A stretch of 64,000 nt of DNA from contig NIVC01000162.1 of the NCBI GenBank assembly GCA_002269645.1, forward strand, positions 487,545 to 551,544. Reading direction: 5' to 3'. The translations under genes were made by a program, and so were the position numbers. The notes beneath the pieces are model-generated. The model ran no database searches, had not been told where the DNA came from, and was given only the letters and a program-made list of their open reading frames with translations. The DNA comes from Macrostomum lignano (Eukaryota). Each line of letters begins with the position of its first letter. Position 1 is the first letter of the stretch. Shown here in pieces: positions 9,101-52,250 of this stretch.

Positions 9101-12100
9101 GTACACACACTCGGAGCACACTGCTGTACACACACTCGGAGCACACCATACTGTACACACACACGGAGCACACTGCTGTACACACACATGGAGCACACTG
9201 CTGTACACACACTTGGAGCACACCATACTGTACACACACTCGGAGCACACTGCTGTACACACACTCGGAGCACACCATACTGTACACACGCACGGAGCAC
9301 ACTGCTGTACACACACTCGGAGCACACCATACTGTACACACACACATGGAGCACACTGCTGTACACACACTCGGAGCACACTGCTGTACACACACTCGGA
9401 GCACACCATACTGTACACACACACGGAGCACACTGCTGTACACACACATGGAGCACACTGCTGTACACACACTTGGAGCACACCATACTGTACACATACA
9501 CGGAGCACACTGCAGTACACACACTAGGAGCACACTGTACTGTACACACACTAGGAGCACACTGCTGTACACACACTAGGAGCACACTGTACTGTACACA
9601 CACTAGGAGCACACTGCAGTACACACACATGGAGCACACTGCTGTACACACACTAGGAGCACACTGCTGTACACACACTCGGAGCACACTGCTGTACACA
9701 CACTTGGAGCACACTGCTGTACACATACACGGAGCACACTGTACTGCACACACACTAGGAGCACATTGTACTGTACACACACTCGGAGCACACTGTACTG
9801 TACACACATTCGGAGCACACTGTACTGTACACACATTCGGAGCACACTGTACTGTACACACACAACTACTACTTAGCTACTAATTTATCACGAATTTGTA
9901 TTTTAACAGTTGCACTCACCCTGTTTCTGACCGTCCAGTCGAGCCGATCAATCAGGCACAGCTGGGCTACACAGGCCGGGCCGGCCGCTGCGGCCAGGTG
10001 GCACGGCGTGTTGCCATGGCGATCGGCTACCTCGGACTGGCGCGGGATCCGCCTGGCCAGCTGGCGCACCAGGAACGGGTTGCCAACCAGACAGGCCAGG
10101 TGCAGCGGCGTCTCCCCGTCCTGAGGAGTCATTTAGAGTGAACTAGTAAAACACTTTACTGTCTATATGGACAGAGCACCATAGACAACAAAAACCGTTC
10201 TTGCTGAATCCCTTGAAGAGGGGCTGGCGCCTCCTCTGAAGCTGGCGCTCCTCTGTTGCTGGCGCCCTTTTCTGTAGCTGGCGCCCCCTCTGTAGCTCGC
10301 GCCCCTTTCTGTTAGCTGGCGCCCTTTTCTGTAGCTGGCGCCAACCTCTGTATCTGGCGCCCCTCTGAAGCTGGCGCTCCCTCTGTAGCTGGCGCCCCCC
10401 CTGGAGTAGCTGGTGCCCCCCCCCCCCTTGTAGCTGGTGCCCCATTATAGCTGGTATAGCTGGTGCCCCCCCCCTGTAACTGGTGGCCCCCTGTAGCTGG
10501 TGCCCCCCTGTAACTGGTGGCCCCCTGTAGCTGGTGCCCCCCCCCTTGTAGCTGGTGCCCCATTATAGCTGGTGCCCCCCCTGTAACTGGTGGCCCCCTG
10601 TAGCTGGTGGCCCCCTGCAGCTGGTGCCCCCCCCCCTGTAGCTGGTGCCCCCCTGTAACTGGTGGCCCCCTGTAGCTGGTGGCCCCTGTAGCTGGTGCCC
10701 CCCCCTGTAGCTGGTGCCCCCCTGTAGCTGGTGCCCCCCTGTAGCTGGTGCCCCCCCTGTAACTGGTGGCCCCCTGTAGCTGGTGGCCCCCTGTAGCTGG
10801 TGCCCCCCTGTAGCTGGTGCCCCCCTGTAGCTGGTGCCCCCCCCCTGTATCTGGTGCCCCCTGTATCTGGTGCCCCCCCTGTAGCTGGTGCCCTTTTTGA
10901 AATTGCAACTCACAGCGGTGAGCGGCGCGGGCTCCCCGGGTCGGCAGTAATCAAGCAGGAGGCTCATCGTAGTCGGGTTGTCGATAGCAGCGGCCAGGTG
11001 CAGCAGGGTGCAGCAGTTGACGGCTGAGCGATTTGGAAGCTGGAACGGACCAAATAGCTGAGTTCGTAGATAGCTGGGATGTCTGCAGTGTTGCAGTGTC
11101 TTTGAGTGAGGCACAGTGTCTTTGAGTGAGGCACAGTGTCTGTGAGGGGGGCGCAGTCTCTATGGGAATGAGATGCAGTGTCTGTGAGGTGGGCGCAGTG
11201 TCTATGGGAATGAGATGCAGTGTCTGTGAGGGGGGCGCAGTGTCTATGGGAATGAGGTGCAGTGTCTATGGGAATGAGGTGCAGTGTCTATGGGAATGAG
11301 GCGCAGTGTCTATGGGAATGAGGTGCAGTGTCTATGAGAGGGGCGGAGTATCTATGGGAATGAGGCACAGTGTATGTTGAGGGGGAGCGCAGTGTCTATG
11401 GGAATGAGGTGCAGTGTCTGTGAGGAGGCGCAGTATCTATGGGAATGAGGTGCAGTGTCTGAGTGAGTCAGGTGCAGTGTCTATGGGAATGAGGTGCAGT
11501 GTCTGTGAGGAGGCGCAGTATCTATGGGAATGAGGTGCAGTGTCTGAGTGAGTGAGGTGCAGTGTCTATGGGAATGAGGTGCAGTGTCTGTGAGGAGGCG
11601 CAGTATCTATGGGAATGAGGTGCAGTGTCTGAGTGAGTGAGGTGCAGTGTCTATGGGAATGAGGTGCAGTGTCTGTGAGGGGGGCGCAGTGTCTAATGGG
11701 AATGAGGTGCAGTGTCTGTGAGAGGGGCGCAGTGTCTATGGGAATGAGGTGCAGTGTCTGTGAGGAGGCGCAGTATCTATGGGAATGAGGTGCAGTGTCT
11801 GAGTGAGTGAGGTGCAGTGTCTATGGGAATGAGGTGCAGTGTCTGTGAGGGGGGCGCAGTGTCTAATGGGAATGAGGTGCAGTGTCTGTGAGAGGGGCGC
11901 AGTGTCTATGGGAATGAGGTGCAGTGTCTGTGAGGAGGCGCAGTGTCTATGGGAGTAAAGCTAAAGTCTTTCCACCGGTGACAAAGTGGAGCCTGGAGCG
12001 AGGCGCTCACCTGAATCCGGTCGGACTTGTACATGAAGGACATCTCCAGCATGCCGGCAGCCACCGCGGTCTGCAGTCTGCCTGGGGTCAGCTCATCGGC

Positions 12101-14604: not shown

Positions 14605-17412
14605 TCAAGCGACGCCTGGCAGCATGGAGGCCAGCAGGGCGCAGAGGCACAGCGCACAGGCCAGGCTCAGCAGCAGCCGCAGGCAGCGAGCGGAGCCGCG
14701 AGCTGGGCGGGCAGCAGTCGGGCGGCCCCAGCCGCGCAGGCGAAACCAGGTGACGCACTCGGTCAAATCGTTGCTAACGGTGGGCTGGTAGCCCAGCGCA
14801 TCGGCGGCGGCGGCCACGCTAAAATAATGCGTCACGCCGGTTTTGCACACCTCGGCTCTGGTTAGCCAGGGCTCGAACTCCAGGCCAAGCCGGTTAGCAA
14901 CGGAGTGGGCCAGCTCGGCTAGCCAGGCCAGGCCATAGACAGCGTGATACGGCGCCGCCAGGCAGGGCGTCGGGTAGCCGAGGCCGCCGGCCAGCTTGGC
15001 GAAGAAGTCGAAATTCGGCGTCGGCGCACCGTCGGAGAGGAAGAAGGCGCGGCCGGCGACGCGGCGGTCACCAAGCAGCAGGCGGTCGGCGGCCTTCACG
15101 TGACCCTTCCAGGGCGGCGGGCAGTGGCGGTTTTTGTTAGCGCGATGCTTGCTAAGCCTAATTCATATTTATATACAATTTTAACCGGCTCTTTCTTAGA
15201 AATTTGCTTTCTTAGAAAATCTCGAAACTCCCCATTTTTTGACGTAGAAAGTAAAACTAAAACCTGACAGCTCTGGCTTCATAGAAAGGCCTTAAATTTT
15301 TCTAAGAAACAACGTTATTCGTTAGTAGAATTTTTTCTAGGCCCCAATTTCTTAGAAACTTTGAACGTCTTCCGAAATCTCTTTTTTTTAATAAAAATTA
15401 TGCATCCGTTTTTGTAGAAAATGTTGTTTTTATTATTCTACTTTCTTAGAAACAATCATAAATCAGAGATATGTGAATATTCCTAGAAAGTTGCCGACTC
15501 ACCTGCACCAAATTGTCGATGTGCAGAAAGTCAACGTCGGCCTGTCGCAGGCCCCAGCGCACGCGGAATGCGCCGACGGCCATGAAGCCGACGGCGCGCG
15601 GCAGGTGACGCTGCTCGCCGGGGCCATAGACTCCGGCTAGGCGGAGAGCGCAGGTGAGCAAGCCCGAGTTTGAGTTGGCGGACAGCACCAGCTGCTCAGC
15701 CTCGCTTTTGGTTCGGCTGTACGCGTCCACGTGCTGAGCGGGGGCGATAGGGAATTATCAATAGGCGATTTTACTAATGGGAGATTTTTCTAATAGGCGA
15801 TTTTTCTAAACGGCGATTTTTAAAAATGCAATTTTTCAAGGCGATTTTTCTGACAGGTGATTTTTCTAAAAGGCGATTTTTCTGATAGGCGACTTTTCTA
15901 ATAGGCGATTTTACTAATGGGAGATTTTTCTAAAAGGCGATTTTTCAAGGCGATTTTTCTACAAGGCGATTTTCTAATAGGTGATTTTTCTAAAAGGCGA
16001 TTTTTCTGATAGGCGATTTTTCTAAAAGGCAATTCTTTCAGCTCGTACATCCAATTTTTATTTTAGGCGATTTCATAGCCAGCGGTGTTTTTATTAGCCG
16101 CTTTTAATTATAGGCAAAGACAAAGGTTATAGGTTCAGCGGTGACGCGGCTGGCTCTCGTCGCAGGTCATTGTAAGAAATTCAGGACCCCGTGTACACCC
16201 CGTGTGAGTGTGTGCGAACTGGCCGTGACTGCTCGCCTCCTCCTTGCTGACTGTCGGTAGGCTGTCCGTGCCTCATGGCCTCTCCGTCCATCGAATTCGA
16301 CTTCGGCAGCCGCTAACTTAACGATTTCAAAGACTTTTCAATCATAAGCCTGCGAGCTCACCCGATCCATCGGCAGATACGGCAGGGTCTCGTCGCCGTT
16401 GCGAATCTCCTGCCCGCCGAACACCACATTGTAGGTGCTCGTGTACACCAGGGCCTTCACGCCGTGCTTCTGGCAGGCTGCCATTTAAATAAAGACTGGC
16501 CATTTGCACTGATCTCTCTGCACCCTCTATGACCTCCTGATCTCTCTGCACCCTCTATGACCTCCTGATCTCTCTGCACCCTCTATGACCTCCTGATCTC
16601 TCTGCACCCTCTATGATCTCCTGATCTCTCTGCACCCTCTATGACCTCCTGATCTCTCTGCACCCTCTATGACCTCCTGATCTCTCTGCACCCTCTATGA
16701 CCTCCTGATCTCTCTGCACCCTCTATGATCTCCTGATCTCTCTGCACCCTCTATGATCTCCTGATCTCTCTGCACCCTCTATGATCTCCTGATCTCTCTG
16801 CACCCTTTATGACCTCCTGATCTCTCTGCACCCTCTATGACCTGTTTGATCTCTCTGCACCCTCTATGACCTGTTTGATCTCTCTGCACCCTCTATGACC
16901 TGTTTGATCTCTCTGCACCCTCTATGACCTGTTTGATCTCTCAGCACCTTGGTCTCTACTCTCTGTACCTCTCGTGCTTTCCACACGTACCCGCAATGAC
17001 ATTCCGAGTGCCAACCACATTTACAGCGTAGATCTTGTCCTTCTTCAGCTGCAAGGTACAACGATATTTAACAGATATTGAATGATAACAAAACAGCAAC
17101 AAAAACTTTGACACAAGCATCTCCCACCATCTCGCCGCCCGACATGCCAAAAGAAGCGACATGGAAAACGCAATCATATCCAGCAGAAACAGCCTGGTCC
17201 ACGTCCTCGAGTTTGGCGACGTCAACCTGCACGCGCTTGAACTTGCTATCGTCTGAGCTGAACTGCAAGTCAGCAAGGCTGACAGAATCTCCGCGAGCCG
17301 CCAGAACCTGGGCGAGACTTCGGCCAACATAGCCGCCTCCGCCAGTGATAAGGAATCGGTGGCTGGACAGACGGTTGCTAAGAGCGCTGCTGCTTCGCAA
17401 TTCGACAGGCAT
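14605..17412 (-). CDS. SDR42E1: SDR42E1-like extended short-chain dehydrogenase (3-beta-HSD family), 396 aa
   Basis: Exons 17412-17128, 17048-16991, 16477-16362, 15733-15503, 15105-14605 are phase-consistent. Motifs: TGGGGYVG, VFHVASFGMSG, LVYTSTYNVVFGGQEIRNGDETLPYLP, catalytic YSRTK, TCALRLAGVYGPGEQRHLPR, C-terminal hydrophobic tail. A 5'UTR donor (AAG|gtaagt) lies at 17842/17841. Confidence 0.92.
15765..16030. repeat. Degenerate aggcgatttttc minisatellite
   Basis: Directly visible tandem units. Confidence 0.85.
16510..16942. repeat. 28-bp minisatellite gatctctctgcaccctctatgacctcct
   Basis: Directly visible tandem units. Confidence 0.95.
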
Positions 17413-36519: not shown

Positions 36520-37736
36520 GGGGGTTAGGGGCGATTCCCTATGGGGTTAGGGGCGATTCTCTATGAGGTTAGGGGCGATTCCCTATGGGGTTAGGGGCGA
36601 TTCTCTATGAGGTTAGGGGCGATTCGTTATGGGGTTAGGGGCGATTCCCTATGGGGTTAGGGGCGATTCTCTATGGGGTTAGGGGCGATTCTCTATGGGG
36701 TTAGGGGCGATTCCCTATGGGGTTAGGGGCGATTCTCTATGAGGTTAGGGGCGATTCCCTATGAGGTTAGGGGCGATTCGTTATGGGGTTAGGGGCGATT
36801 CCCTATGGGGTTAGGGGCGATTCTCTATGGGTTAGGGGCGATTCTCTATGGGGTTAGGGGCGATTCCCTATGGGGTTAGGGGCGATTCTCTATGAGGTTA
36901 GGGGCGATTCCCTATGAGGTTAGGGGCGATTCGTTATGGGGTTAGGGGCGATTCTCTATGGGGTTAGGGGCGATTCCCTATGGGGTTAGGGGCGATTCCC
37001 TATGGGGTTAGGGGCGATTCCCTATGGGGTTAGGGGCGATTCTCTATGGGGTTAGGGGCGATTCTCTATGGGGTTAGGGACGATTCTCTATGGGGTTAGG
37101 GGCGATTCTCTATGGGGTTAGGGACGATTCTCTATGAGGTTAGGGGCGATTCTCTATGGGGTTAGGGGCGATTCTCTATGGGGTTAGGGGCGATTCTCTA
37201 TGGGGTTAGGGGCGATTCTCTATGAGGTTAGGGGCGATTCTCTATGGGGTTAGGGGCGATTCTCTATGGAGTGGGGTTAGTGGCGATTTTCTATGGGGTT
37301 AGTGGCGATTTTCTATGGGGTTAGTGGCGATTTTCTATGGGGTTAGGGACGATTCTCTATGGGGTTAGGGGCGATTCTCTATGGGGTTAGGGGCGATTCT
37401 CTATGGGGTTAGGGACGATTCTCTATGGGGTTAGGGGCGATTCTCTATGGGGTTAGGGACGATTCTCTATGAGGTTAGGGGCGATTCTCTATGGGGTTAG
37501 GGGCGATTCTCTATGGGGTTAGGGGCGATTCTCTATGGGGTTAGGGGCGATTCTCTATGAGGTTAGGGGCGATTCTCTATGGGGTTAGGGGCGATTCTCT
37601 ATGGAGTGGGGTTAGTGGCGATTTTCTATGGGGTTAGTGGCGATTTTCTATGGGGTTAGTGGCGATTTTCTATGGGGTTAGGGACGATTCTCTATGGGGT
37701 TAGGGGCGATTCCCTATGGGGTTAGGGGCGATTATC
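36520..37736. repeat. 22-bp TTAGGG-containing minisatellite ggggttaggggcgattctctat
   Basis: Directly visible, about 55 copies. Confidence 0.95.
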
Positions 37737-37817
37737 AAGCAGAAAATCGGTCAAAAAAAGAAAACGCCAACGGACTGCGAAATGCTATAGGCTGTTTTGT
37801 TCATAAAAGTACATCAA

Positions 37818-40800
37818 TCAGTTTTTCCTCATAGGCGGCTTCAGCGCCCAGTTCGGCGCCCCGTCAGGAGGCGGCCGCTGCGACCTGGAGCGCAGCGGAT
37901 CCCGGATGCAGCGGCCCAGCTGCTGCTTCTGCTTGGTGGTGGCGCAGTTGTCCATGTAAACCTGGTCAAGCTGGCGTTTCAATCGTTTCACTTCGTCCGA
38001 TTCCCAGGCGAGCTCGCGGACGCGCAGCTGGTCGGAGCCGCCGGAGCCGCACTCCTCGTCGGAGCTGGTGTAGTCCCGGGTGAGGATGACGCGGAACTTC
38101 TCCAGCTCGTCCGAGCTGAGGCTGGTGGCCACGAGTTCGAAGCTTTTCTGGCGTCGGTTCAGCTTCTGGAAGGTTGACGATGAGGATAAGAGGTTGGCGG
38201 AGAATGTGATTTGGGGACTCTGATGGGAGAATGGGATTTGGGGATGCTGATGGGAGAATGGGATTTGGGATGCAGGTGGGAGCATGGGATTTGGGGTGCT
38301 GTTGGGACAATTTGATTTGAGGATTCAGGTGGGAGAATGGGATTTGGGGATGATTGTGGGAGAATGGGATTTGGGGATTCTAATGCGAGAATGGGATTTG
38401 GGGATGCTTGTGGGAGAGTGGGATTTGAGGATTCTGGTGGGAGAATGGGATTTGGGGATGCTGATAAGAGAATGGGATTTGGGGATGCTGATGCGAGAAT
38501 GGGATTTGGGGATGCTGATGGGAGAATGGGATTTGAGGATTCTAATGCGAGAATGGGATTTGGGGATGCTGATGGGAGAGTGGGATTTGAGGATTCTAAT
38601 GCGAGAATGGGATTTTGGGATGCTTGTGGGAGAGTGGGATTTGAGGATTCTGGTGGGAGAATGGGATTTGGGGGATGCTGATAAGAGAATGGGATTTGGG
38701 GATGCTGATAAGAGAATGGGATTTGGGGATGCTTATGGGAGAGTGGGATTTGAGGATTCTAATGCGAGAATGGGATTTTGGGATGCTTGTGGGAAAGTGG
38801 GATTTGAGGATTCTGGTGGAGAATGGGATTTGGGGATGCTTATGGGAGAGTGGGATTTGAGGATTCTAATGCGAGAATGGGATTTTGGGATGCTTGTGGG
38901 AAAGTGGGATTTGAGGATTCTGGTGGGAGAATGGGATTTGGGGATGCTGATAAGAGAATGGGATTTGGGGATGCTTATGGGAGAGTGGAATTTGAGGATT
39001 CTAATGCGAGAATGGGATTTTGGGATGCTTGTGGGAGAGTGGGATTTGAGGATTCTGGTGGGAGAATGGGATTTGGGGATGCTGATGGGAGAATGGGATT
39101 TGGGGATGCTTGTGGGAGAATGGGATTTGAGGATTCTGGTGGGAGAAAGGGATTTGGGGATGCTGATGGGAGAATGAGTTTCTTCAAGGAATTTAGAATC
39201 TTGATTTGGACCGGAGCATATTTATGGAGGAATGGAATGAGAAATGGTTTCGATACGGCAATTATCGGTACCTTACCATCCGGTTTTGAGTGGTAGTCAC
39301 AAAGCTAATCAAATAATAATGCAAATTCTATACAATATGACACTGCACTAAAGTAGAAGCGCCCCTAAAGAATCCCACGGGCCAAGTCTGCAGACTAGAA
39401 GTAGATTTTTAATCTGAACAGGCAGATAAGCAAGCAGTATTGGACGATTGGCCAAATGGAATAACTCATTACTGTTAGGCGAAGCTTGCTGCGCATCTGC
39501 TTTCTAAAATCCCAGAAAATGTCAGTCAGCCGGCTAGTTTTAGGCAGTCCTGCGCGCAAAGATAACAGTTGCTTATTGTAAATCGGGGCGAATTGAATTT
39601 TTGATTTTAAACTTGCACTGCTGGAGCCAGAGAGGACGATAAGTAGAATAGAATGCTTTTATTCCGACAAAATTTTGCTGGAGGTTAATAGACTAAGCAA
39701 GTGAGCAGTCTGATTACATTATGGCGCAGTTTGATCCGAATCTGCTTCCCAAAGTCCCAGAAAATCTCCGACAGTCGGCCAGCCTTTGGCAGCCCTGCGA
39801 AGTTTAAATAATTCATTATAATAATTTGCATTATTAGCTATGGTCTGCGTTGTTTAATTCGGGCAAGGGTGAAGAGTGAACAAGAGAGTGAACAGAAAGG
39901 TGAATAAAATGAACAAGAGAGTGAACAGAAAGGTGAATAGAATGAACAAGAGAGTGAACAGAAAGAAGAAGAGAGTGAACAAGAGAGTGAACAGAAAGGT
40001 GAATAGAATGAACAAGAGAGTGAACAGAAAGGTGAATAGAGTGAACAAGAGAGTGAACAGAAAGGTGAAGAGAGTGAACAAGAGAGTGAACAGAAAGGTG
40101 AATAGAGTGAACAAGAGAGTGAACAGAAAGGTGAATAGAGTGAACAAGAGAGTGAACAGAAAGGTGAAGAGAGTGAACAAGAGAGTGAACAGAAAGGTGA
40201 AGAGAGTGAATGAGAGAAAGAACAAGAGAGTGAACAGAAAGGTGAAGAGAGTGAATGAGAGAGTGAACAGAAAGGTGAAGAGAGTGAATGAGAGAGTGAA
40301 CAAGAGAGTGAACAGAAAGGTGAATAGAATGAACAAGAGAGTGAACAGAAAGAAGAAGAGAGTGAACAAGAGAGTGAACAGAAAGGTGAAGAGAGTGAAC
40401 GAGAGAGTGAACAGAAAGGTGAATAGAGTGAACAAGAGAGTGAACAGAAAGGTGAATAGAGTGAACAAGAGAGTGAACAGAAAGGTGAAGAGAGTGAATG
40501 AGAGAGTGAACAGAAAGGTGAAGAGAGTGAATGAGAGAGTGAACAGAAAGGTGAAGAGAGTGAATGAGAGAGTGAACAGAAAGGTGAAGAGAGTGAATGA
40601 GAGAGTGAACAGAAAGGTGAAGAGAGTGAATGAGAGAGTGAACAAGAGAGTGAACAGAAAGGTGAATAGAATGAACAAGAGAGTGAACAGAAAGAAGAAG
40701 AGAGTGAACAAGAGAGTGAACAGAAAGGTGAAGGGAGTGAATGAGAGTGAACAGAAAGGTGAAGAGAGTGAATGAGAGTGAACAGAAAGGTGAAGAGAGT

Positions 40801-43800
40801 GAACAGAAAGGTGAAGAGAGTGAACAGAAAGGTGAAGAGAGTGAACAAGAGAGTGAACAGAAAGGTGAAGAGAGTGAACAAGAGAGTGAACAGAAAGGTG
40901 AAGAGAGTGAACAGAAAAGTGAAGAGAGTGAACAAGAGAGTGAAGAGAGTGGTGAAGAGAGTGAACAAGAGAGTGAAGAGAGTGGTGAAGAGAGTGAACA
41001 AGAGAGTGAACAGAAAGGTGAAGAGAGTGAATAAGAGAGTGAACAGAAAAGTGAAGAGAGTGAACAAGAGAGTGAAGAGAGTGAAGATGAAGAAGTCCTC
41101 ATTTTGGCTTTAAGCAGTTACAAAAAATTGCAAATACAAGCACAATGCAGCCCTTCTTGCCAATCCTAGTTGGAAACAGGGATAAAATATACGACTAGAA
41201 TTGGTCCCACGGTTGGCACACAGGAGAAGGAAAAGCATTGAAATCAAAATTACACTTAGGCGAAATTTAGTCCGAATCTGCTTCCCAAAGTCTCTGAAAA
41301 TCTCGCACATTCGACCGGCTTTTGGTAGCCCTGCGAAAAAAACGCATTTAGATGGAAGAGATACAGGCTTTGTTTCAATCGTTTTTTGCGCTTGCATTAT
41401 TGATTCGAGAAGAGCGGTGGATGGTGTAAAAGATAATAAAGATGCGAAAATGTTACGAAATCGATCTATTGATTTAGACTAGGCTATGCTCAAATAAGTT
41501 AGGACAGTTGGATCCTATTCTATGTCTATTCTCAGTGGTAATCAAGGTCTACTCTCTTGATGATGAAGGGTCTATCCTCAGGGGTAATCAAGGTCTACTC
41601 TCTGGGTGATGGTCTATTCTCGGGGGTATTCAAGGTTACTCTCTTGATGATGAAGAGTCTATTCTCAGGTGTAATAAAGGTCTACTCTCTGGGTGATAAA
41701 GGGTCTATGCTCAAGGTGACGGAGGTCTATTCCCAAGGTGATAAAGGGTCTAGGCTCAAGGTGACGGAGGTCTATTCCCAAGGTGATAAAGGGTCTATGC
41801 TCAAGGTGACGGAGGTCTATTCCCAAAGTGATAAAGGGTCTAGGCTCAAGGTGACGGAGGTCTATTCCCAAGGTGATAAAGGGTCTATGCTCAAGGTGAC
41901 GGAGGTCTATTCCCAAAGTGATAAAGGGTCTAGGCTCAAGGTGACGGAGGTCTATTCCCAAGGTGCTGAGGGTCTATTCTCAGGAATAATGAAGGATGGA
42001 TTCTGGATGGTGATAGGGCGATTTTGCATAGACTAGATTCCAGAATTAACTAAAAAATGGCAGATTTGAGCGCAAGGAAATCAGAAAAAGCAGAAAATGC
42101 GATGTAAGTAATATAAATATTAAACTCGTTTCTTTGGCTTCAGCAAGTGTTATTGGTATTTTTGTTCCAAATTTTTTATTGGAATAAAGTTGATAAATGC
42201 CAAAATTTGATACGCAGGCATTAGTAGATTAAAACTATGCTTTTCGAAGAATAATATATCCCTTACTAAGCCGCGATATTTGTCGTGCACTTGTCGCTTA
42301 AAGTCGCTAAAAATGACGGACAGTCTGCCAGACTTGGGCAGGTCTACAATATAGCGCATAGTTTTTATGGGCACAAATGCAAGCAAGCTACTGAAAGTAG
42401 TACAATTTAGCGGCACTATTGCCTGCTGATTTGGAATGGAAACGTCTGAAACAAACAGCTACAGTAGAGCTGGGGCTATCCTATTAACTATAGCGAGAAC
42501 ATAACTCACAAGCTGCTTAAACTTGCATCTGGCCTTCAGGGCAAAATCGGAAAACATGTACAGAATACGACCGCGACAAGGAATCCCTGAAACACAGACG
42601 GAGTCAATAATCTCTGAAAACAGTGCAGAGTATATACTGCTCTTGACCAGCTGTGCTAGAACGACACCATGCTCGTTGGAAACGGCGCTTTTCTTTGGTT
42701 CAAAGAATTATTTCCTGGATTACTAAGCACTAAATAACTTACAGACAGTCTCATTTTCAAACGACTTGCGGAACGAAAATTTTGAAATATATACAGCAGC
42801 CTACACGAGGTGGGGATTCCTTCGGATGGAGGGCGGCGACCGCGATTATTTTTTTATATCGAGATTTATATGTGCAGAGATAAGAAAGTCGCAAGTGCTT
42901 TGTGACCCGGCAGTAGTAGACTATTACTAGCAGTAGGTAGTCTCGGGTTTAACTTAAAAAGACAGACTCACGCTAATCCGATATTTGGCCCGAATTTTGG
43001 TGCCAAAATTGGAGTGCAAATAGTTAATCCGACTGTCCTTAGGGAGGTCTGCAATCGATGCCAGTAAAATCAATAAGCGATACGCTTCGGTAGGAGTAAA
43101 GAGCGAGGGCCAAGGAAGGAAAACATCGCAAGCTGCTGAGGCGCTAAGAAATTTGAAAATGCCTACTTAAACTTAGTAGTAGTATGTATGAAATTGCACG
43201 TATTTATCAATCTTACAAAGCTTCTAAACCGGAAGCGCATTTTCCGGCGCAAATCGATAAATAGGAAGATAGTGCGCGATGCGTAGGGCAGCTCTGAAAT
43301 CAAGTGTTTTATGGTGCTGCTTTGGGGCCGGAATCTGCCGCTAAGGTAGACAGGCCTAATTGCCTACTGAAAACGTCGCTAGAGATCAATTTACGGAGTT
43401 CAGACAGACGAAGCACTGAACAGGTGATTTTCGTTTATAAGTTTATTAACTTCGATCCAAACTACAGATACTAGAATAACTAGATGGACCACTCAGCACA
43501 TTTGCGTGTAAGCTACTTGCAGTTCAGTAGAAAGTTATACAGAAGCATTTTAATGTATTTTTCAAGACAAGGCTTATTTATTTTCTATGAAACACTAAAA
43601 CCTACCCCAAGCTGCCAAGTACATTTCAGTGGGGTGTTGGCCAATGTACAATACGAGTGAACCAATTAGCAAGTTGTTTACGTCTGCAAGCTTTGTTTGT
43701 TTGTTTGGCTTCTAAACTTATCAAAGTCATTTGAGCTTATGTTTTCTTCTTTGCTACTGAACTGGAAGTAGAAAGCTGTTTTACTAAATAAATATTCACA

Positions 43801-46800
43801 AGTGGCCTTATCTAGTTATTTTAGTATTTTGTGCACTAAACAGAGTAATGATCTTGATTAGACCTCAATACAGAGTTCCATTGCATCGAGATTCACCCCT
43901 AGAATCCTAAGCATCCCTTGACAGGAACGGATCCCGAGACTTCTACCCTCACAATCAAGCTAATAGCTTGCTAAAACAAAGAAAAACAAGAGAGCCACAA
44001 CACCAAAAAACCATGACAGCTGCTCATCCTGTCTTACTGTCTCTCTGTACTTGGCCCTAAGCGCGCTGCGTATGTGACAAAACACCCTGTCAGGCCGGGA
44101 TTTGTACGGCAAATCTGTAAGCATTAAATATTTTGTTAAATAATAATTCCTAGCCTCTAATCAGCATTTAGCCGGAACCAAATTAGACGAAATGGATTAG
44201 AAACGTCACAAGAGCACCTATTGATTAAATTGAACAGAAGAGACCAGATTGACTAAATCAAACCAACTTGGGTCTCACATTAAGTTTCAAAGCGTGCCTA
44301 GACTCGAAGCGCATCTTAGAGAATGCTGTTGAGATTCGAAATTCGCTTCGCAGTCCTGAAATTGAACAGGTCTGAACTATGCCGCTCTGCCTTGTTTCAA
44401 ATTCACTTTTTCTCATTGCTCAGCACTTGTTGGAAGGAGAAACCGCCATTTGCCCGGCTAATCCCAACTTACTAGCGCTTTGAAACGCTTTTTAGCGTCG
44501 GTTCTAAACGAAATGAAAATCATTGAGATCCGCGCCTCTTTCGGCAGCCCTGCAAACGCGCGCAATTGTTAAGGCGGGGCATTGAGCTTAAACAAATAGG
44601 GGAGATCTGAACTCGGCTTTCACAGGCCTGGAAACGGCTTTGCTTCATTTCTGTTATCATTTAAACAGAAAATATTTAATACTACTGTAAAAATGCGACA
44701 TCTACTACTTACGCAAAGTTTAAGTCGCGTTCTGGCGTTTAGTTTAAACGACTTGAATATAAAGTTAATTCGGCCATCTTTAGGCAGCCCTGGAAATCGG
44801 CCAATCGGTTGTTGCCTCTTGTATATTAACTAAGAAGAGATATTTGCATCTGGAAACGCTGCATGCAGCTCAGTGGACTCAAGCTCAAGGCGAATAATAG
44901 GGAAGCCAGAACTAGTTAAAGTTTGATTCTTCAGTTAAGCAAGAGTATATATCCCTATCCGTTGCCCCATCAACACTTACACACAGTTTAAGCCGGGCTC
45001 TGGCATTCCGTCTAAAGGACAGAAATATAAAATTTATTCGGCCCTCTTTTGGCAGACCTAAAAAAACAGATTGCATACGAATAAATTGGATTCTCTTGGC
45101 CCAGCAGCTGACATTTTTGTCAGTGTCAATTGACTTGACCGGAGAATCTGGAAACGCTGCAGCTAAAGTTTAAGCATTCGAATCCATAGCAGCCGGAGTC
45201 AGACTGGAGGCGACACGCAATGACACATAACTTGATAAATACTATTAGTCGCAGCACTTACAGAAGTTTTCAATCTAAGCCGCATATCGCGACGGAATTC
45301 AGCGAACATGGCGACAGTACGCCTTAGCAGTTCTACAATTTTTTTTCAATAATTTAAATATAATAACAGTGCACAAATATCCTTTTAATACTACTATCCA
45401 GCGGCCTAGTTAGTAGCAGATGCACATAGTGTACTATAAAATGTCAGATCTATAAAAAACTGCGTATAAACAGCTGACAAGGGCAGAATAGCGGGACGTT
45501 ACCAATTGGTGAAGAAAGACAGCAGTCAGAACCCCATTTTTATTGAAAATAATAGTTAATTAGGTAATTAATTCATACGCGACTTACAATTGATGGCAGC
45601 AATTTTATTGCCATTACTCAACAATTTATTGCTGAATATAATATATAAAAACAAATAATAATATTATTTAAAAGTGAGTGCATTGCTTCGAAAGGTGAAA
45701 GATAGTGCTTTAAAATTACAAATGAAATTATTGCCTCTGAATTATATGTCATATTTAGTAAATTTTAACATAGATAATTTAATTTGCTCAAGCCAAAGAA
45801 CTTGCGACGTTTCCAGACCAAGTAGGCAAGGAGAAAAAGTGACACATTTGGAATTACACAAGCTGCTTATATAATAATTATTAACAGTGCTTGTACTTGC
45901 TATCAGTAGTAGTATGCAGAGAATATTGTTTCAAATGCACAAATTCGCAAGCAAGATATTCAACTAGTTAGTAGGCTTAAGGGAGGCGACCAACAAAGAG
46001 TTAAATTTATTGATTTTTTTGGTGCACCAATATCTCAGCTTTGCATCCCTGTCAACTTAATAAGCACCAATTCTTATTAAATGCATCATATACACAAAAT
46101 TATAATTCCGTTTTGGACACCCATCGTATTTATCCAGCTATAAAAATAATTGATTTTCAATATCAAGCCGCCAATCTCAAGCCTACACTAATATGCTCAA
46201 TACTACGGTAGCTAACAGCTGCATATTAAGTGCCAAAAAATGCCAAACTCACTCTGCCAGACGTCGTCCGGCCAGCCTTTGCCTTCGGCCATCTCTTTAG
46301 CCTTAGCCATGACCATGGCGGCAACTTGTTGGTTGGGCTCCGCGGAGAAGCTAAGCGAGAGGACAAGTGGGAATCGACAGGAGCAGGAATTAGCCAATTT
46401 AATGCAGCCATACATTATTAATAAAGAATGGGGACGGCAACTCACTGAAGGATTTGGGCACGGCAACCCACTGAAGGATTTGGGCACGGCAACCCACTGA
46501 AGGATTTGGGCACGGCAACTCACTGAAGGATTTGGGCACGGCAACCCACTGAAGGATTTGGGCACGGCAACCCACTGAAGGATTTGGGCACGGCAACTCA
46601 CTGAAGGATTTGGGCACGGCAACTCACTGAAGGATTTGGGCACGGCAACTCACTGAAGGATTTGGGCACGGCAACTCACTGAAGGATTTGGGCACGGCAA
46701 CTCACTGAAGGATTTGGGCACGGCAACTCACTGAAGGATTTGGGCACGGCAACTCACTGAAGGATTTGGGGATGGGCACGGCAACCCACTGAAGGATTTG

Positions 46801-49800
46801 GGCACGGCAACCCACTGAAGGATTTGGGGATGGGGACGGCAACCCACTGAAGGATTTGGGCACGGCAACTCACTGAAGGATTTGGGGATGGGGACGGCAA
46901 CTCACTGAAGGATTTGGGGACGGCAACTCACTGAAGGATTTGGGCACGGCAACCCACTGAAGGATTTGGGCACGGCAACTCACTGAAGGATTTGGGCACG
47001 GCAACCCACTGAAGGATTTGGGCACGGCAACCCACTGAAGGATTTGGGCACGGCAACCCACTGAAGGATTTGGGGATGGGGACGGCAACTCACTGAAGGA
47101 TTTGGGGACGGCAACTCACTGAAGGATTTGGGGACGGCAACTCACTGAAGGATTTGGGGATGGGGACGGCAACCCACTGAAGGATTTGGGCACGGCAACT
47201 CACTGAAGGATTTGGGCACGGCAACCCACTGAAGAATTTGGGGATGGGGACGGCAACCCACTGAAGGATTTGGGGGTGGGGACGGCAACCCACTGAAGGA
47301 TTTGGGCACGGCAACCCACTGAAGGATTTGGGCACGGCAACCCACTGAAGAATTTGGGGATGGGGACGGCAACCCACTGAAGGATTTGGGGATGGGGACG
47401 GCAACCCACTGTAGGATTTGGGGGTGGGGACGGCAACCCACTGAAGGATTTGGGGGTGGGGACGGCAACCCACTGAAGGATTTGGGGGTGGGGAGGGCAA
47501 CCCACTGAAGGATTTGGGGGTGAGGACGGCAACCCACTGAAGGATTTGGGGATGGGGACGGCAACCCACTGTAGGATTTGGGGGTGGGCACGGCAACCCA
47601 CTGAAGGATTTGGGCACGGCAACCCACTGAAGGATTTGGGCACGGCAACCCACTGAAGGATTTGGGCACGGCAACTCACTGAAGGATTTGGGGATGGGGA
47701 CGGCAACCCACTGAAGGATTTGGGCACGGCAACCCACTGAAGGATTTGGGGATGGGGACGGCAACTCACTGAAGGATTTGGGGACGGCAACTCACTGAAG
47801 GATTTGGGGACGGCAACTCACTGAAGGATTTGGGGATGGGGACGGCAACTCACTGAAGGATTTGGGGACGGCAACTCACTGAAGGATTTGGGGATGGGGA
47901 CGGCAACTCACTGAAGGATTTGGGGATGGGGACGGCAACTCACTGAAGGATTTGGGCACGGCAACCCACTGAAGGATTTGGGCACGGCAACTCACTGAAG
48001 GATTTGGGCACGGCAACCCACTGAAGGATTTGGGCACGGCAACCCACTGAAGGATTTGGGGATGGGGACGGCAACTCACTGAAGGATTTGGGCACGGCAA
48101 CCCACTGAAGGATTTGGGGACGGCAACTCACTGAAGGATTTGGGCACGGCAACTCACTGAAGGATTTGGGCACGGCAACTCACTGAAGGATTTGGGGACG
48201 GCAACCCACTGAAGGATTTGGGGATGGGGACGGCAACCCACTGTAGGATTTGGGGGTGGGGACGGCAACCCACTGAAGGATTTGGGGGTGGGGACGGCAA
48301 CCCACTGAAGGATTTGGGGGTGGGGAGGGCAACCCACTGAAGGATTTGGGGGTGAGGACGGCAACCCACTGAAGGATTTGGGGATGGGGACGGCAACCCA
48401 CTGTAGGATTTGGGGGTGGGGACGGCAACCCACTGAAGGATTTGGGGATGGGGACGGCAACCCACTGAAGGATTTGGGGATGGGGACGGCAACCCACTGA
48501 AGGATTTGGGGACGGCAACTCACTGAAGGATTTGGGGATGGGGACGGCAACCCACTGAAGGATTTGGGGGTGGGGACGGCAACCCACTGAAGGATTTGGG
48601 CACGGCAACCCACTGAAGGATTTGGGCACGGCAACCCACTGAAGAATTTGGGCACGGCAACCCACTGAAGAATTTGGGGATGGGGACGGCAACCCACTGA
48701 AGGATTTGGGGATGGGGACGGCAACCCACTGTAGGATTTGGGGGTGGGGACGGCAACCCACTGAAGGATTTGGGGATGGGGACGGCAACCCACTGAAGGA
48801 TTTGGGGGTGGGGAGGGCAACCCACTGAAGGATTTGGGGGTGAGGACGGCAACCCACTGAAGGATTTGGGGGTGGGGAGGGCAACCCACTGAAGGATTTG
48901 GGGGTGAGGACGGCAACCCACTGAAGGATTTGGGGGTGGGGACGGCAACCCACTGAAGGATTTGGGGGTGAGGACGGCAACCCACTGAAGGATTTGGGGA
49001 TGGGGACGGCAACCCACTGAAGGATTTGGGGGTGGGGAGGGCAACCCACTGAAGGATTTGGGGGTGAGGACGGCAACCCACTGAAGGATTTGGGGGTGGG
49101 GAGGGCAACCCACTGAAGGATTTGGGGGTGAGGACGGCAACCCACTGAAGGATTTGGGCACGGCAACCCACTGAAGGATTTGGGCACGGCAACCCACTGA
49201 AGAATTTGGGCACGGCAACCCACTGAAGAATTTGGGGATGGGGACGGCAACCCACTGAAGGATTTGGGGATGGGGACGGCAACCCACTGTAGGATTTGGG
49301 GGTGGGGACGGCAACCCACTGAAGGATTTGGGGATGGGGACGGCAACCCACTGAAGGATTTGGGGGTGGGGAGGGCAACCCACTGAAGGATTTGGGGGTG
49401 AGGACGGCAACCCACTGAAGGATTTGGGGGTGGGGAGGGCAACCCACTGAAGGATTTGGGGGTGAGGACGGCAACCCACTGAAGGATTTGGGGGTGGGGA
49501 CGGCAACCCACTGAAGGATTTGGGGGTGAGGACGGCAACCCACTGAAGGATTTGGGGGTGAGGACGGCAACCCACTGAAGGATTTTGGGGATGGGGACGG
49601 CAACCCACTGAAGTATTTGGGGATGGGGAGGGCAACCCACTGAAGGATTTGGGGGTGAGGACGGCAACCCACTGAAGTATTTGGGGATGGGGAGGGCAAC
49701 CCACTGAAGGATTTGGGGATGGGGACGGCAACCCACTGAAGGATTTGGGGGTGAGGACGGCAACCCACTGAAGGATTTGGGGATGGGGAGGGCAACCCAC

Positions 49801-51520
49801 TGAAGGATTTGGGGGTGAGGACGGCAACTCACTGAAGGATTTTGGGGATGGGGACGGCAACCCACTGAAGGACTCCGCATTCAAGCTTTACTTACGGCAT
49901 GCTAAAATCGAATAGGTGAGGTCCGTTTCCTTTAAGCATTTTGTAGGCTCGTCGCATGATAGTCTTGCACTCGGGAGGCACGTCGCCGCCGCTTCCACCG
50001 CCGCCGCCGCCGCCGCCGCTGCCGAAGCCGCTGACGCCGGCTCCGGAATAATCGGCGGACAAGTCGAGTCGAGGAATTTTGGCATAGGGGAATCCGGCGC
50101 TAAGACTGTCGTCGTTCAGCTCCTCCGTGATGATGCAATCGTCTTCCTCCTCTTCGTCGGCTTCGTAATCGTCGCCTTCCACCTGTGATTCGACATTCGT
50201 ACATAACGGCTGCGTTTTAGACACAACATTAATGTGCTCGGGCGATCAAATGACCTTGAGTAATAGCAGAGTCAAATGACCTTGAGTGATAGCAGAGTCA
50301 AATGACCTTGAGTGATAGCAGAGTCAAATGACCTTGAGTGATAGCAGAGTCAAATGACCTTGAGTGATAGCAGAGTCAAATGACCTCGAGTGATAGCAGA
50401 GTCAAATGACCTTGAGTGATAGCAGAGTCAAATGACCTCGAGTGATAGCAGAGTCAAATGACCTCGAGTGATAGCAGAGTCAAATGACCTCGAGTGATAG
50501 CAGAGTCAAATGACCTTGAGTGATAGCAGAGTCAAATGACCTTGAGTGATAGCAGAGTCAAATGACCTCGAGTGATAGCAGAGTCAAATGACCTTGAGTG
50601 ATAGCAGAGTCAAATGACCTCGAGTGATAGCAGAGTCAAATGACCTTGAGTGATAGCAGAGTCAAATGACCTTGAGTGATAGCAGAGTCAAATGACCTTG
50701 AGTGATAGCAGAGTCAAATGACCTTGAGTGATAGCAGAGTCAAATGACCTCGAGTGATAGCAGAGTCAAATGACCTTGAGTGATAGCAGAGTCAAATGAC
50801 CTTGAGTGATAGCAGAGTCAAATGACCTTGAGTGATAGCAGAGTCAAATGACCTTGAGTGATAGCAGAGTCAAATGACCTTGAGTGATAGCAGAGTCAAA
50901 TGACCTTCAGTGATAGCAGAGTCAAATGACCTTGAGTGATAGCAGAGTCAAATGACCTTCAGTGATAGCAGAGTCAAATGACCTTCAGTGATAGCAGAGT
51001 CAAATGACCTTCGGTGATAGCAGATTCAAATGACCTTCAGTGACGGTGGCAACACAGTTATAAAACGACTAACCTTAATGGCGCCAAGCGCCGCGCCCAG
51101 CACGCTACTGGCGCCCATGTCGCCAAGTACAGACGCCTTCTCTTCCTTAGTTGAAGCATTGGCGCCACCAGACAAAGACGAGGCGGCAGTTGATTCGCGA
51201 TGCAGCTGCTGATGCTGCGATGGCGGCGGCTGTTGCTGCTGGTGCTGCTGCTGTCCGGACACGCTGGCGACAAGGCCGGCAGCTTCTAGCTCGGCGAGCC
51301 GGTCGCTTCGATCGAATGCCCGACAATACCTGGGCTCCATGGAGTGAACCACGTGAGTGTGCAGATTGCCGATGATTTTCAGTGCAGAGAACAGTTCGCG
51401 CTCGGCCATGGACTCTACGAGCATTTGCGCGTTAGTGATGGTGGATTCGAACAGGGTGAGAGGCGAGAAACTGTTGCCAGGCGGCAGCAGGCTCGAGTGC
51501 GGGCTGAGTACGTCTGCCAT
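37818..51520 (-). CDS. Gene B: C14orf93/DUF4616-like putative DNA-binding protein (about 418 aa) with a mutually exclusive exon array
   Basis: Constitutive exons 51520-51074, 50182-49896, 46350-46253 and 38165-37818, plus one variant exon from 45332-39473. The frame closes only with a phase 1 to 0 exon. Clear paralogy to gene A (FSPLTLFE.TITNAQML.ESMA.REL, LKGNGPHLF.FSMP, RQKSFEL, RDYTSSDE, LRVR.LAWES, PPP..P.WAL). Family assignment rests on recalled motif similarity (F.S..N..V, KLRSRR, SDEE...W). Confidence 0.85.
38195..39175. repeat. About 27-bp G-rich minisatellite gggagaatgggatttggggatgctgat
   Basis: Directly visible tandem units. Confidence 0.93.
39473..39549 (-). CDS. Gene B variant exon 14 (77 nt): xLPKTSRLTDIFWDFRKQMRSKLRLT
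   Basis: Splice sites gcgcag| and |gtaatg; phase 1 to 0. Confidence 0.85.
39718..39794 (-). CDS. Gene B variant exon 13 (77 nt): xLPKAGRLSEIFWDFGKQIRIKLRHN
   Basis: Splice sites cttcgcag| and |gtaatc; phase 1 to 0. Confidence 0.85.
39868..41088. repeat. Purine-rich compound repeat (gagagtgaacagaaaggtgaa) inside the variant-exon array
   Basis: Directly visible tandem units. Confidence 0.95.
41254..41330 (-). CDS. Gene B variant exon 12 (77 nt): xLPKAGRMCEIFRDFGKQIRTKFRLS
   Basis: Splice sites tttttcgcag| and |gtaatt; phase 1 to 0. Confidence 0.85.
41540..41985. repeat. 45-bp minisatellite (with degenerate flank) inside the variant-exon array
   Basis: ggtgataaagggtctatgctcaaggtgacggaggtctattcccaa. 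Confidence 0.9.
42267..42343 (-). CDS. Gene B variant exon 11 (77 nt): xLPKSGRLSVIFSDFKRQVHDKYRGL
   Basis: Splice sites ttgtag| and |gtaagg; phase 1 to 0. Confidence 0.88.
42510..42586 (-). CDS. Gene B variant exon 10 (77 nt): xIPCRGRILYMFSDFALKARCKFKQL
   Basis: Splice sites gtttcag| and |gtgagt; phase 1 to 0. Confidence 0.87.
42743..42819 (-). CDS. Gene B variant exon 9 (77 nt): xIPTSCRLLYIFQNFRSASRLKMRLS
   Basis: Splice sites ccgaag| and |gtaagt; phase 1 to 0. Confidence 0.83.
42972..43048 (-). CDS. Gene B variant exon 8 (77 nt): xLPKDSRINYLHSNFGTKIRAKYRIS
   Basis: Splice sites attgcag| and |gtgagt; phase 1 to 0. Confidence 0.88.
43217..43293 (-). CDS. Gene B variant exon 7 (77 nt): xLPYASRTIFLFIDLRRKMRFRFRSF
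   Basis: Splice sites atttcag| and |gtaaga; phase 1 to 0. Confidence 0.85.
44038..44114 (-). CDS. Gene B variant exon 6 (77 nt): xLPYKSRPDRVFCHIRSALRAKYRET
   Basis: Splice sites cttacag| and |gtaaga; phase 1 to 0. Confidence 0.85.
44279..44355 (-). CDS. Gene B variant exon 5 (77 nt): xLRSEFRISTAFSKMRFESRHALKLN
   Basis: Splice sites atttcag| and |gtgaga; phase 1 to 0. Confidence 0.8.
44473..44549 (-). CDS. Gene B variant exon 4 (77 nt): xLPKEARISMIFISFRTDAKKRFKAL
   Basis: Splice sites tttgcag| and |gtaagt; phase 1 to 0. Confidence 0.88.
44713..44789 (-). CDS. Gene B variant exon 3 (77 nt): xLPKDGRINFIFKSFKLNARTRLKLC
   Basis: Splice sites tttccag| and |gtaagt; phase 1 to 0. Confidence 0.88.
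44981..45057 (-). CDS. Gene B variant exon 2 (77 nt): xLPKEGRINFIFLSFRRNARARLKLC
   Basis: Splice sites ttttttag| and |gtaagt; phase 1 to 0. Confidence 0.88.
45262..45332 (-). CDS. Gene B variant exon 1 (71 nt): xLLRRTVAMFAEFRRDMRLRLKTS
   Basis: Splice sites ttgtag| and |gtaagt; phase 1 to 0; no stop codon; homologous pattern. Confidence 0.8.
45786..45842 (-). promoter_or_regulatory. Putative RNA docking site for mutually exclusive splicing of gene B
   Basis: Transcript sequence UCACUUUUUCUCCUUGCCUACUUGGUCUGGAAACGUCGCAAGUUCUUUGGCUUGAGC lies between the constitutive exon and variant exon 1. It is reverse-complementary to elements upstream of variant exons 2-12. Confidence 0.75.
46432..49872. 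repeat. 26/32-bp G-rich minisatellite, 3.4 kb
   Basis: ggatttgggcacggcaacccactgaa and ggatttggggatggggacggcaacccactgaa units. Confidence 0.96.
50268..51042. repeat. 26-bp minisatellite gagtgatagcagagtcaaatgacctt
   Basis: Directly visible tandem units. Confidence 0.96.
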
Positions 51521-51579
51521 TCCGGAGCGGCGGGCATGAACGGAACAGTAATGGATGAATTAATTAGTGACGAGTTCAA

Positions 51580-52250
51580 GTGAACCTGTAAATCCCTAAA
51601 TTGAACTTGTAAATCCCTAAATTGAACCTGTAAATCCCTAAATTGAACCTGTAAATCCCTAAATTGAACCTGTAAATCCCATAATTCAACCTGCAACTAC
51701 CATAATCGAAGCTATAAATCCCATAATTGAACCTGCAACTCCCTAAATTGAACCTAAAACTCCCTAAATTGAACCTAAAACTCCCTAAATTGAACCTGTA
51801 AATCCCTAAATTGAACCTGCAACTCCCTAAATTGAACCTAAAACTCCCTAAATTGAACCTGTAAATCCCTAAATTGAACCTGCAACTCCCTAAATTGAAC
51901 CTAAAACTCCCTAAATTGAACCTGTAAATCCCTAAATTGAACCTGCAACTCCCTAAATTGAACCTAAAACTCCCTAAATTGAACCTGTAAATCCCTAAAT
52001 TGAACCTGTAAATCCCTAAATTGAACCTGCAACTCCCTAAATTGAACCTAAAACTCCCTAAATTGAACCTGTAAATCCCTAAATTGAACCTGTAAATCCC
52101 TAAATTGAACTTGTAAATCCCTAAATTGGACTTGTAAATCCCATAATTCAACCTGCAACTACCATAATCCAGGCTGTAAATTCCATAATTGAACCTGTAA
52201 GTCATAATTGAACATGTAACTACCATAATCAGAGCTGTAAATCATAAAAT
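51580..52250. repeat. 21-bp minisatellite ccctaaattgaacctgtaaat
   Basis: Directly visible tandem units. Confidence 0.94.

Follow-up and report, generated by a model that had tools for sequence, protein, structure and literature searches.

The window analysed here, a 64 kb stretch of Macrostomum lignano DNA, contains an uncharacterised gene on the minus strand with 14 tandem homologous variant exons. The upstream constitutive exon, exon C (46350-46253, 98 nt), encodes ...SFSAEPNQQVAAMVMAKAKEMAEGKGWPDDVWQ and ends in phase 1 at a GTGAGT donor, while the downstream constitutive terminal exon, exon B (38165-37818), encodes KLNRRQKSFELVATSL...PMRKN followed by a stop. Both are identical to two M. 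lignano gene models in UniProt (P0001 and P0006). The gene encodes a roughly 240-aa uncharacterised protein with no Pfam domain.

Variant exons and the docking element

The variant exons lie between exons C and B, at 45332-39473. Thirteen are 77 nt and E1 is 71 nt. We observed that all of them have AG/GT borders, are open in one phase, and encode homologous basic peptides of the form LPKxGRxxxIFxxFxxxxRxKxR. On the minus strand, they are E1 (45332-45262, LLRRTVAMFAEFRRDMRLRLKTS), E2 (45057-44981), E3 (44789-44713), E4 (44549-44473), E5 (44355-44279), E6 (44114-44038), E7 (43293-43217), E8 (43048-42972), E9 (42819-42743, with the acceptor context ccgaag), E10 (42586-42510), E11 (42343-42267), E12 (41330-41254), E13 (39794-39718) and E14 (39549-39473). 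E1, E5 and part of E8 are found in the UniProt models. These are, however, only gene models that string several variants together through cryptic acceptors.

About 400 nt downstream of the exon C donor lies a docking element of 57-70 nt (45853-45784). Its central core, CTGGAAACGTCGCAAGTTCT, is at 45816-45797, with a 5' flank sub-site at 45853-45819 and a 3' flank sub-site at 45800-45784. A sequence-only reading had described a 57-mer at 45842-45786, pieces of which recur in antisense upstream of most variant exons, and we confirmed both the string and the positions of the pieces. The element extends further 5', to about 45853, where the E5 selector pairs.

Selector sites and their pairing with the docking element

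Eleven to twelve of the 13 introns that separate variant exons carry a site (selector) complementary to the docking element. The selectors for E2 (45138-45177; the site at 45147-45161 is 90 nt from the acceptor), E3 (44841-44885, about 52 nt), E8 (43108-43149, about 60-73 nt), E9 (42872-42913; 42884-42902, 65 nt) and E10 (42665-42710; 42677-42710, 91 nt) pair with the core and the 3' flank. Those for E7 (43353-43388, about 60-66 nt) and E11 (42414-42461; 42414-42446, 71 nt) pair with the 5' flank and the core. The E6 selector (44192-44217; 44193-44212, 79 nt) pairs with the core, with two G.U wobbles. The E4 selector (44611-44643; 44625-44636, 76 nt) is short, having only the 12-nt core GGCCTGGAAACG. 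The E5 selector (44395-44436, about 40 nt) pairs with the 5' flank (16/17 match to TCACTTTTTCTCCTTGC, and beyond), and the E12 selector (42121-42146; 42130-42146) with the 3' flank only (16/17). The latter is 800 nt from its acceptor because a minisatellite (41524-41982) lies in between. Similarly, the probable selector for E13 (41150-41179; 41153-41177), which pairs with the 5' flank and the start of the core, is 1359 nt from its acceptor because of a satellite at 39873-41085. The sequence-only reading had called the matches for E13 and E14 weak. The E13 match is better than this, whereas E14 has no convincing selector. No selector was detected for E1, the variant nearest the docking element.

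We next estimated whether this complementarity could arise by chance. The 11-mer core GGAAACGTCGC, at up to 2 mismatches, had 7 plus-strand hits within 42438-45160, each upstream of a variant exon. The remaining 9 hits in the 64 kb include the docking element itself, and 7.7 hits are expected for the whole window on both strands. Local-alignment scores of the docking element against each intron were compared with 500 dinucleotide shuffles. None of the shuffles reached the observed score for E5, E7, E9, E11 and E13, while 3-7/500 did for E3, E6, E8 and E10, and 24-27/500 for E2 and E12. The scores for E4, E1 and E14 were not significant. The summed score was 348 against 231 +/- 9 (z = 12.6), and the same-sense control summed to 248. 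Duplex energies for E2-E11 gave z = -1.3 to -5.4 against shuffles, the E8 selector giving -5.4. The E2 and E3 duplexes were estimated at -34.4 and -42.0 kcal/mol (0/100 shuffles for E3).

The docking element ranked first of about 1,700 24-nt windows for composition-corrected pairing with the 14 upstream regions (z = -4.8). Only 12-mers from its core had complements upstream of 4 or more exons, the maximum being 7. In a MAFFT alignment of ten upstream introns, the selector core CGTTTCCAG was the only conserved block (mean column identity, 41 %). The motif was not dispersed in the roughly 84 kb of M. lignano sequence that could be examined.

Thermodynamic folding predicted that the docking element pairs with selectors rather than with nearby sequence. 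The MFE of a 1.8-kb stretch paired nearly every base of the element with the E5 and E2 selectors, and the unconstrained folds paired it with selectors over 600-1400 nt. In the ensemble of a 2.1-kb fold, 46.4 of 57 bases paired more than 400 nt away, while the next non-overlapping window reached 13.8 and the mean was 5.6. Duplexes on the transcribed strand were on average 2.5 kcal/mol more stable than those of the opposite strand (11 of 17, one-sided Wilcoxon p = 0.036); however, this signal is weak, and E2 and E3 are not independent data points.

Conservation in a diverged paralogous locus

We also examined a diverged paralogous M. lignano locus (L001), which has the same gene pair and colinear orthologous 77-nt exons that are only 51-68 % identical at the nucleotide level. 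Its homologue of exon C is at 15712-15809. We observed that the core of its docking element (15885-15904) is 20/20 identical, in an intron that otherwise cannot be aligned, and that selectors lie 55-87 nt upstream of its exons x2-x5. The E6 selector is 17/18 identical to that of the orthologous exon x3, and GCGACGTTTTCA in the E7 selector is 12/12 identical to that of x4. The orthologous selectors keep the same G.U wobble changes. This pattern indicates purifying selection on both partners. Since the core is identical in both loci, classical two-sided covariation cannot be shown. When own-dock and cross-dock pairing were compared, the selectors of the window favoured their own dock (-453 vs -341 kcal/mol) but those of L001 did not (-148 vs -159), although this test is confounded by flank GC content. 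A minisatellite in L001 (15076-15373) also resembles the docking element.

Competing RNA pairing as the proposed mechanism

Together, these analyses support the proposal of the sequence-only reading, and its refutation tests that can be run in silico were all passed. In the absence of transcript evidence for mutually exclusive use, we consider it probable (about 0.68) that this is a system of competing long-range RNA pairings of the Dscam1 exon 6 type, acting in the pre-mRNA to choose among the 14 exons. We infer that pairing with one selector loops out the proximal variants and brings the 3' splice site of that exon close to the exon C donor, favouring the join C -> Ek -> B. Most selectors use the central core CTGGAAACGTCGCAAG, so only one of them would be able to pair at a time. 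The sequence-only reading had taken the selectors to cover overlapping windows and hence to compete. However, the E5 and E12 selectors do not overlap each other, so not all selectors compete for the same bases. Selectors for the flanks and for the core can bind together, as E5 and E2 do in the MFE, so pairing alone does not enforce strict exclusivity. E1, which has no selector, would be the unpaired default. Exon length (77 nt, or 71 nt for E1, both 2 mod 3) together with the phase-1 end of exon C means that skipping, or including two variants, shifts the reading frame of exon B, and only single inclusion would give the full protein.

Other explanations appear less likely. The complementarity could be a non-functional relic, in which tandem duplication copied the exon with its flanking intron and the docking element is an old inverted copy of the same intron piece. 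The exons are clearly tandem duplicates, duplication automatically produces competing complementary sites (PMC6071210), and the weak or missing sites of E1, E4 and E14 are what decay would predict. There are also no expression data. However, decay should have erased the sites, yet they are conserved between two loci with diverged exons and unalignable introns, and within the window the selector is the only conserved intron block. Gene conversion would have homogenised the exons as well. It is also possible, though doubtful, that the pairing is real but drives skipping of exon blocks, back-splicing, or formation of a dsRNA substrate for editing or small-RNA production. Long inverted complementary sites flanking exons are known to promote looping-out and circular RNAs (PMC8330042), the predicted duplexes are long (20-40 bp with mismatches), and a related transcript (L002) from the sister gene skips its homologous exon. 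On the other hand, the conserved position of the selectors 40-91 nt upstream of acceptors in both loci is the geometry expected for activating an acceptor, not only for looping out, and looping out E1..Ek-1 is in any case part of the docking model.

Least likely, the conserved GGAAACGTCGC element could be a protein-binding motif, either a DNA site for a transcription or architectural factor, resembling protocadherin CSE/enhancer looping, or an intronic splicing enhancer read by an RNA-binding protein. The most conserved part is indeed a short core of 11-20 nt, present once per exon at a fairly fixed distance from the acceptor, and the convergent orientation of the sites recalls CTCF-mediated promoter choice in protocadherin clusters. 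However, the variant exons are internal, each with a pyrimidine tract, an AG acceptor and phase continuity with exon C, so they are not alternative first exons. A motif read in RNA would not be conserved as its reverse complement. The E5 and E12 selectors lack the core and share no sequence with each other, but each matches 16/17 an adjacent flank of one contiguous element, which a motif model cannot explain. Substitutions also lean toward G.U-preserving changes on the transcribed strand.

The array and its selectors most likely arose by tandem duplication of an exon together with one arm of an intronic stem, as in the model of Ivanov and Pervouchine (PMC6071210). The colinear orthology of exons and selectors between the two loci fits an array built this way before the loci separated. 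The sister gene in the window (57744-53196) seems to have a single copy of the homologous exon and shows no detectable stem of this sequence, and the ancestral stem-loop is therefore not observed.

The layout matches the Dscam1 exon 6 cluster of Drosophila and other arthropods (Graveley 2005; PMC11802352; PMC8791459), where a single conserved docking site lies in the intron just downstream of the upstream constitutive exon, one selector complementary to an overlapping part of it sits upstream of each tandem variant, both are conserved islands in otherwise diverged introns, and folding predicts pairing over hundreds to thousands of nucleotides. The gene and the phylum (Platyhelminthes) are unrelated to Dscam, so independent origin is the reasonable reading, and we found no report of such a system in flatworms. 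In contrast to Dscam1 exon 6, there are 14 variants rather than 48, frame adds a second filter, the first and last variants lack selectors, the docking element is composite, and no repressor equivalent to hrp36 is known. In Drosophila 14-3-3xi, Mhc, srp and MRP, and in mammalian ATE1 and DNM1 (PMC4691838, PMC7797038, PMC11802352), mutually exclusive choice is likewise attributed to intronic elements that compete for one partner, and these systems arose independently in unrelated genes. Those clusters have 2-7 exons, and the docking site is often downstream or bidirectional. Here, there are 14 exons with a single upstream docking element, a scale that has so far been described only for arthropod Dscam1.

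Organization of the gene and its variant exons

We observed that the gene lies on the minus strand and includes exon C (46350-46253), which ends in phase 1 at a GTGAGT donor. This is followed by fourteen homologous variant exons between 45332 and 39473, and by the terminal exon B (38165-37818). Thirteen of the variant exons are exactly 77 nt long and E1 is 71 nt. All of them have AG acceptors and GT donors, are open in the one phase that continues exon C, and encode related basic peptides of the form LPKxGRxxxIFxxFxxxxRxKxR. Upstream exons at about 51.5 kb and 50 kb belong to the same gene. The UniProt entry A0A1I8J016 of Macrostomum lignano and its cluster-mate A0A1I8HCJ5 are residue-for-residue identical to exons C, E1, E5, part of E8, and B. 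However, these public gene models concatenate E1, a 5'-extended E5 and a 3' part of E8 through cryptic acceptors to keep the frame. This is probably a misannotation of a mutually exclusive exon array, and shows that the array has not been recognised as alternative exons.

To look for relatives of the protein, we searched Pfam and PDB. No Pfam domain was found in any exon product, there was no significant PDB match, and the only relatives found were uncharacterised M. lignano proteins. Exact look-ups of three protein entries (P0001, P0004 and P0005) and of an ORF of the window found nothing, and two further protein searches for additional comparator loci or isoforms returned no hits. Rfam found no known RNA family in 37000-52000.

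A tandem sister gene lies upstream (57744-53196, minus strand). Its exons are A' (57744-57046), C' (55827-55739, which also ends in phase 1) and B' (53582-53196). It seems to have only one candidate homologous exon (54635-54538, 98 nt), and no array and no dock motif. The array therefore expanded in only one of the two tandem genes.

Complementarity between the docking element and the variant introns

We next examined the docking element (dock) at 45853-45784. The 57-mer at 45842-45786 reads as quoted in the sequence-only reading, and the plus-strand pieces of it (the selectors) are where that reading put them. On the pre-mRNA these pieces are antisense to the 57-mer and lie 40-91 nt upstream of the acceptors of E2-E11. 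For E12 (42130-42146) and E13 (41153-41177) the site sits at the 5' end of the intron, and is separated from the acceptor by a minisatellite (41524-41982) and a satellite (39873-41085), respectively. In total, 11-12 of the 13 introns that separate variants carry a selector. E1 and E14 have none and E4 is weak, so the set is incomplete in comparison to Dscam1 exon 6.

We further estimated whether this complementarity could have arisen by chance. The 11-mer core at up to 2 mismatches had 7 hits on the plus strand within 42438-45160, each upstream of a variant. The remaining 9 hits in the 64 kb include the dock itself, while the whole window, both strands, is expected to give 7.7. When the dock was compared with each intron by local alignment, the scores exceeded all 500 dinucleotide shuffles for E5, E7, E9, E11 and E13, and only 3-7 of 500 shuffles reached the observed score for E3, E6, E8 and E10. 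E2 and E12 were marginal, while E4 (a 12-nt match), E1 and E14 were not significant. The summed score was 12.6 SD above shuffles, and the same-sense control behaved like the shuffles. RNAduplex energies gave the same picture, with z = -1.3 to -5.4 for E2-E11. Raw RNAduplex energies of the whole 57-mer against whole introns allow huge loops and are noisy, and GC-rich windows (GGC repeats near 50000) outscored the dock until composition was corrected.

To assess whether the dock is special, 24-nt windows along the pre-mRNA from about 46400 to 39473 were run against the 100 nt upstream of all 14 acceptors, with reversed and antisense targets used to correct for composition. The four best of about 1,700 windows were all inside 45828-45793 (z = -4.8). 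An exhaustive 12-mer scan showed that only dock-core 12-mers have complements (up to 2 mismatches) upstream of 4 or more exons, with a maximum of 7. These scans found no second hub, and no separate docking system acting on sequences downstream of the donors, as the apparent hits there were the same selectors seen from the neighbouring exon. A MAFFT alignment of the ten short upstream introns had 41 % mean column identity, and its only consensus block besides the acceptor was CGTTTCCAG, the selector core.

An unconstrained MFE fold of 1.8 kb (45900-44100) paired nearly every dock base with selectors, the 5' half with the E5 selector, 1.4 kb away, and the 3' half with the E2 selector, 0.65 kb away. 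In the partition function of a 2.1-kb fold, the 57-nt window starting exactly at 45842 ranked first of 839 windows in the first intron for long-range pairing, with 46.4 of 57 bases paired more than 400 nt away (the next non-overlapping window had 13.8, and the mean was 5.6). The same result showed that the dock is composite, a nuance missed in the sequence-only reading, which had the selectors covering overlapping windows of one element and competing for it. E5 uses only the 5' flank (45853-45819), E12 uses only the 3' flank (45800-45784), and E13 uses the 5' flank plus only the start of the core, while E2-E4 and E6-E11 share the central core. A flank selector and a core selector can therefore be bound together, so competition may not be strictly one-of-fourteen.

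Conservation in a paralogous locus and alternative interpretations

A paralogous M. lignano locus, L001 (NIVC01000521.1), carries the same pair of genes. At least five of its 77-nt variant exons are colinearly orthologous to those of the window (x1 to E2-E4, x2 to E5, x3 to E6, x4 to E7 and x5 to E8), although their nucleotide identity is only 51-68 %. The introns after exon C cannot be aligned, apart from two colinear blocks. The better one is CTGGAAACGTCGCAAGTTCT, identical 20/20 to the dock core of the window. Exons x2-x5 of L001 each have a selector 55-87 nt upstream of the acceptor. In the orthologous intron pairs E6/x3 and E7/x4, the only conserved block is the selector, which is 17/18 and 12/12 identical and keeps the same C-to-U change that leaves a G.U pair. 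Both partners are therefore better conserved than the coding exons they serve, although only this one comparator locus and about 84 kb of this genome were available.

The second block, GTATGA(TC)ATTAATTAYCTAATTAACT (45578-45553 in the window; 16100-16127 in L001), lies colinear with the dock and about 200-220 nt downstream of it in both loci. It is AT-rich with TAATTA palindromes, and could be a homeodomain-type DNA site or an RNA element. It is complementary to sites upstream of L001 exons only because it is palindromic, and it is not a common partner in the window. L001 also has a 27-nt minisatellite of about 11 copies (15076-15373, unit TGTGTTTCCTGGAAACCGCTAGTCTCC) in the intron upstream of its exon C, which resembles the dock core in the same orientation. 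It may derive from the dock or act as extra weak docking sites, and the window has no equivalent. In addition, the 5' flank of the L001 dock (TGTTTTAACAATTG, 15869-15882) is 13/14 complementary to the last 14 nt of the intron before the first variant exon (16929-16942). Pairing would mask that acceptor, but this may be chance in AT-rich sequence.

We also evaluated other interpretations of these elements. Neutral decay of duplication relics would not produce the conservation pattern seen between the two loci, and neither would gene conversion. A shared protein-binding motif cannot explain the observation that the E5 and E12 selectors share no sequence with each other, yet each matches 16/17 an adjacent flank of one contiguous element. 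Pairing was also favoured by strand, since duplexes computed for the transcribed strand were on average 2.5 kcal/mol more stable than for the opposite strand (11 of 17, one-sided p = 0.036). This fits G.U-tolerant selection at the RNA level, although the signal is modest. The core does not vary between the loci. We also compared the selectors on their own dock and on the other dock. This test was positive for the window (-453 vs -341 kcal/mol) but not for L001 (-148 vs -159), and it is confounded by flank GC content. A protocadherin-type choice among variable first exons does not fit, since every variant has a pyrimidine tract and an AG acceptor and continues the phase of exon C. The gene is also not a Dscam homolog by the Pfam and PDB searches, which gave no domain or relative for the protein.

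Inferred mechanism of exon choice and surrounding features

The layout is that of Dscam1 exon 6, in which the dock follows the upstream constitutive exon and one selector precedes each variant (PMC11802352). We infer that pairing with selector k loops out E1..Ek-1 and brings the Ek acceptor next to the exon C donor, that core-using selectors exclude one another, and that E1, which has no selector, is the default when the dock is unpaired. Since exon length is 2 mod 3 and exon C ends in phase 1, skipping or double inclusion shifts the frame, which would remove such products at the protein level. In the absence of isoform-level transcripts, this frame rule gives only indirect support for the use of one variant per mRNA. 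L002 (Logan SRR30276804, 1211 nt), a transcript of a sister-gene homologue from another sample of unknown source species, joins the C-type exon directly to the B-type exon, giving a +1 frameshift and an early stop. It is either an exon-skipped isoform or splicing noise, but it shows what skipping does. We are highly confident that the complementarity is real and under selection, while its control of exon choice in the Dscam-like way is probable (about 0.68). The origin is best explained by tandem duplication of the exon plus one arm of a stem (PMC6071210).

Docking/selector systems were found by full-text searches in arthropod Dscam1, 14-3-3xi, Mhc, srp, MRP and PGRP-LC, and in mammalian ATE1 and DNM1, but none was found in flatworms or in Macrostomum. 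Exon choice on a large scale by one docking site and many selectors has been a hallmark of arthropod Dscam1, and the other known cases have few exons. The present system is notable for its size (14 variants), its phylum and its compactness. A 14-variant system in a platyhelminth gene would show that this RNA-structure solution arises repeatedly wherever exons duplicate in tandem, which would support the duplication-origin model. It would also offer a second, much smaller and genetically tractable model, since M. lignano has transgenesis and RNAi, and the core cluster from E1 to E11 spans 3.6 kb, small enough for minigenes. More tentatively, this would be the first large (14-exon) docking-site/selector system outside arthropods, evolved convergently in a flatworm gene of unknown function and predating an old locus duplication. 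The three sub-sites of its composite dock would let two selectors bind at once, allowing nested or combinatorial control of exon choice rather than simple one-of-N competition.

Large satellite and minisatellite arrays (46429-49872, 39873-41085, 41524-41982 and 38199-39176; also about 3400-5400 and 7300-9900; units of 32, 33, 23-45 and 27 nt) fill several introns of the gene, and push the E12 and E13 selectors 0.8-1.4 kb away from their acceptors. Neighbouring genes unrelated to the array were also seen on the minus strand. An exon at 171-386 has a TRPM2-like domain (E = 1.7e-9), open reading frames at about 1152-2300 are unassigned (1152-1718 gave no Pfam hit), and an exon at 15449-15754 is 3-beta-hydroxysteroid dehydrogenase/epimerase-like (E = 1.7e-15).
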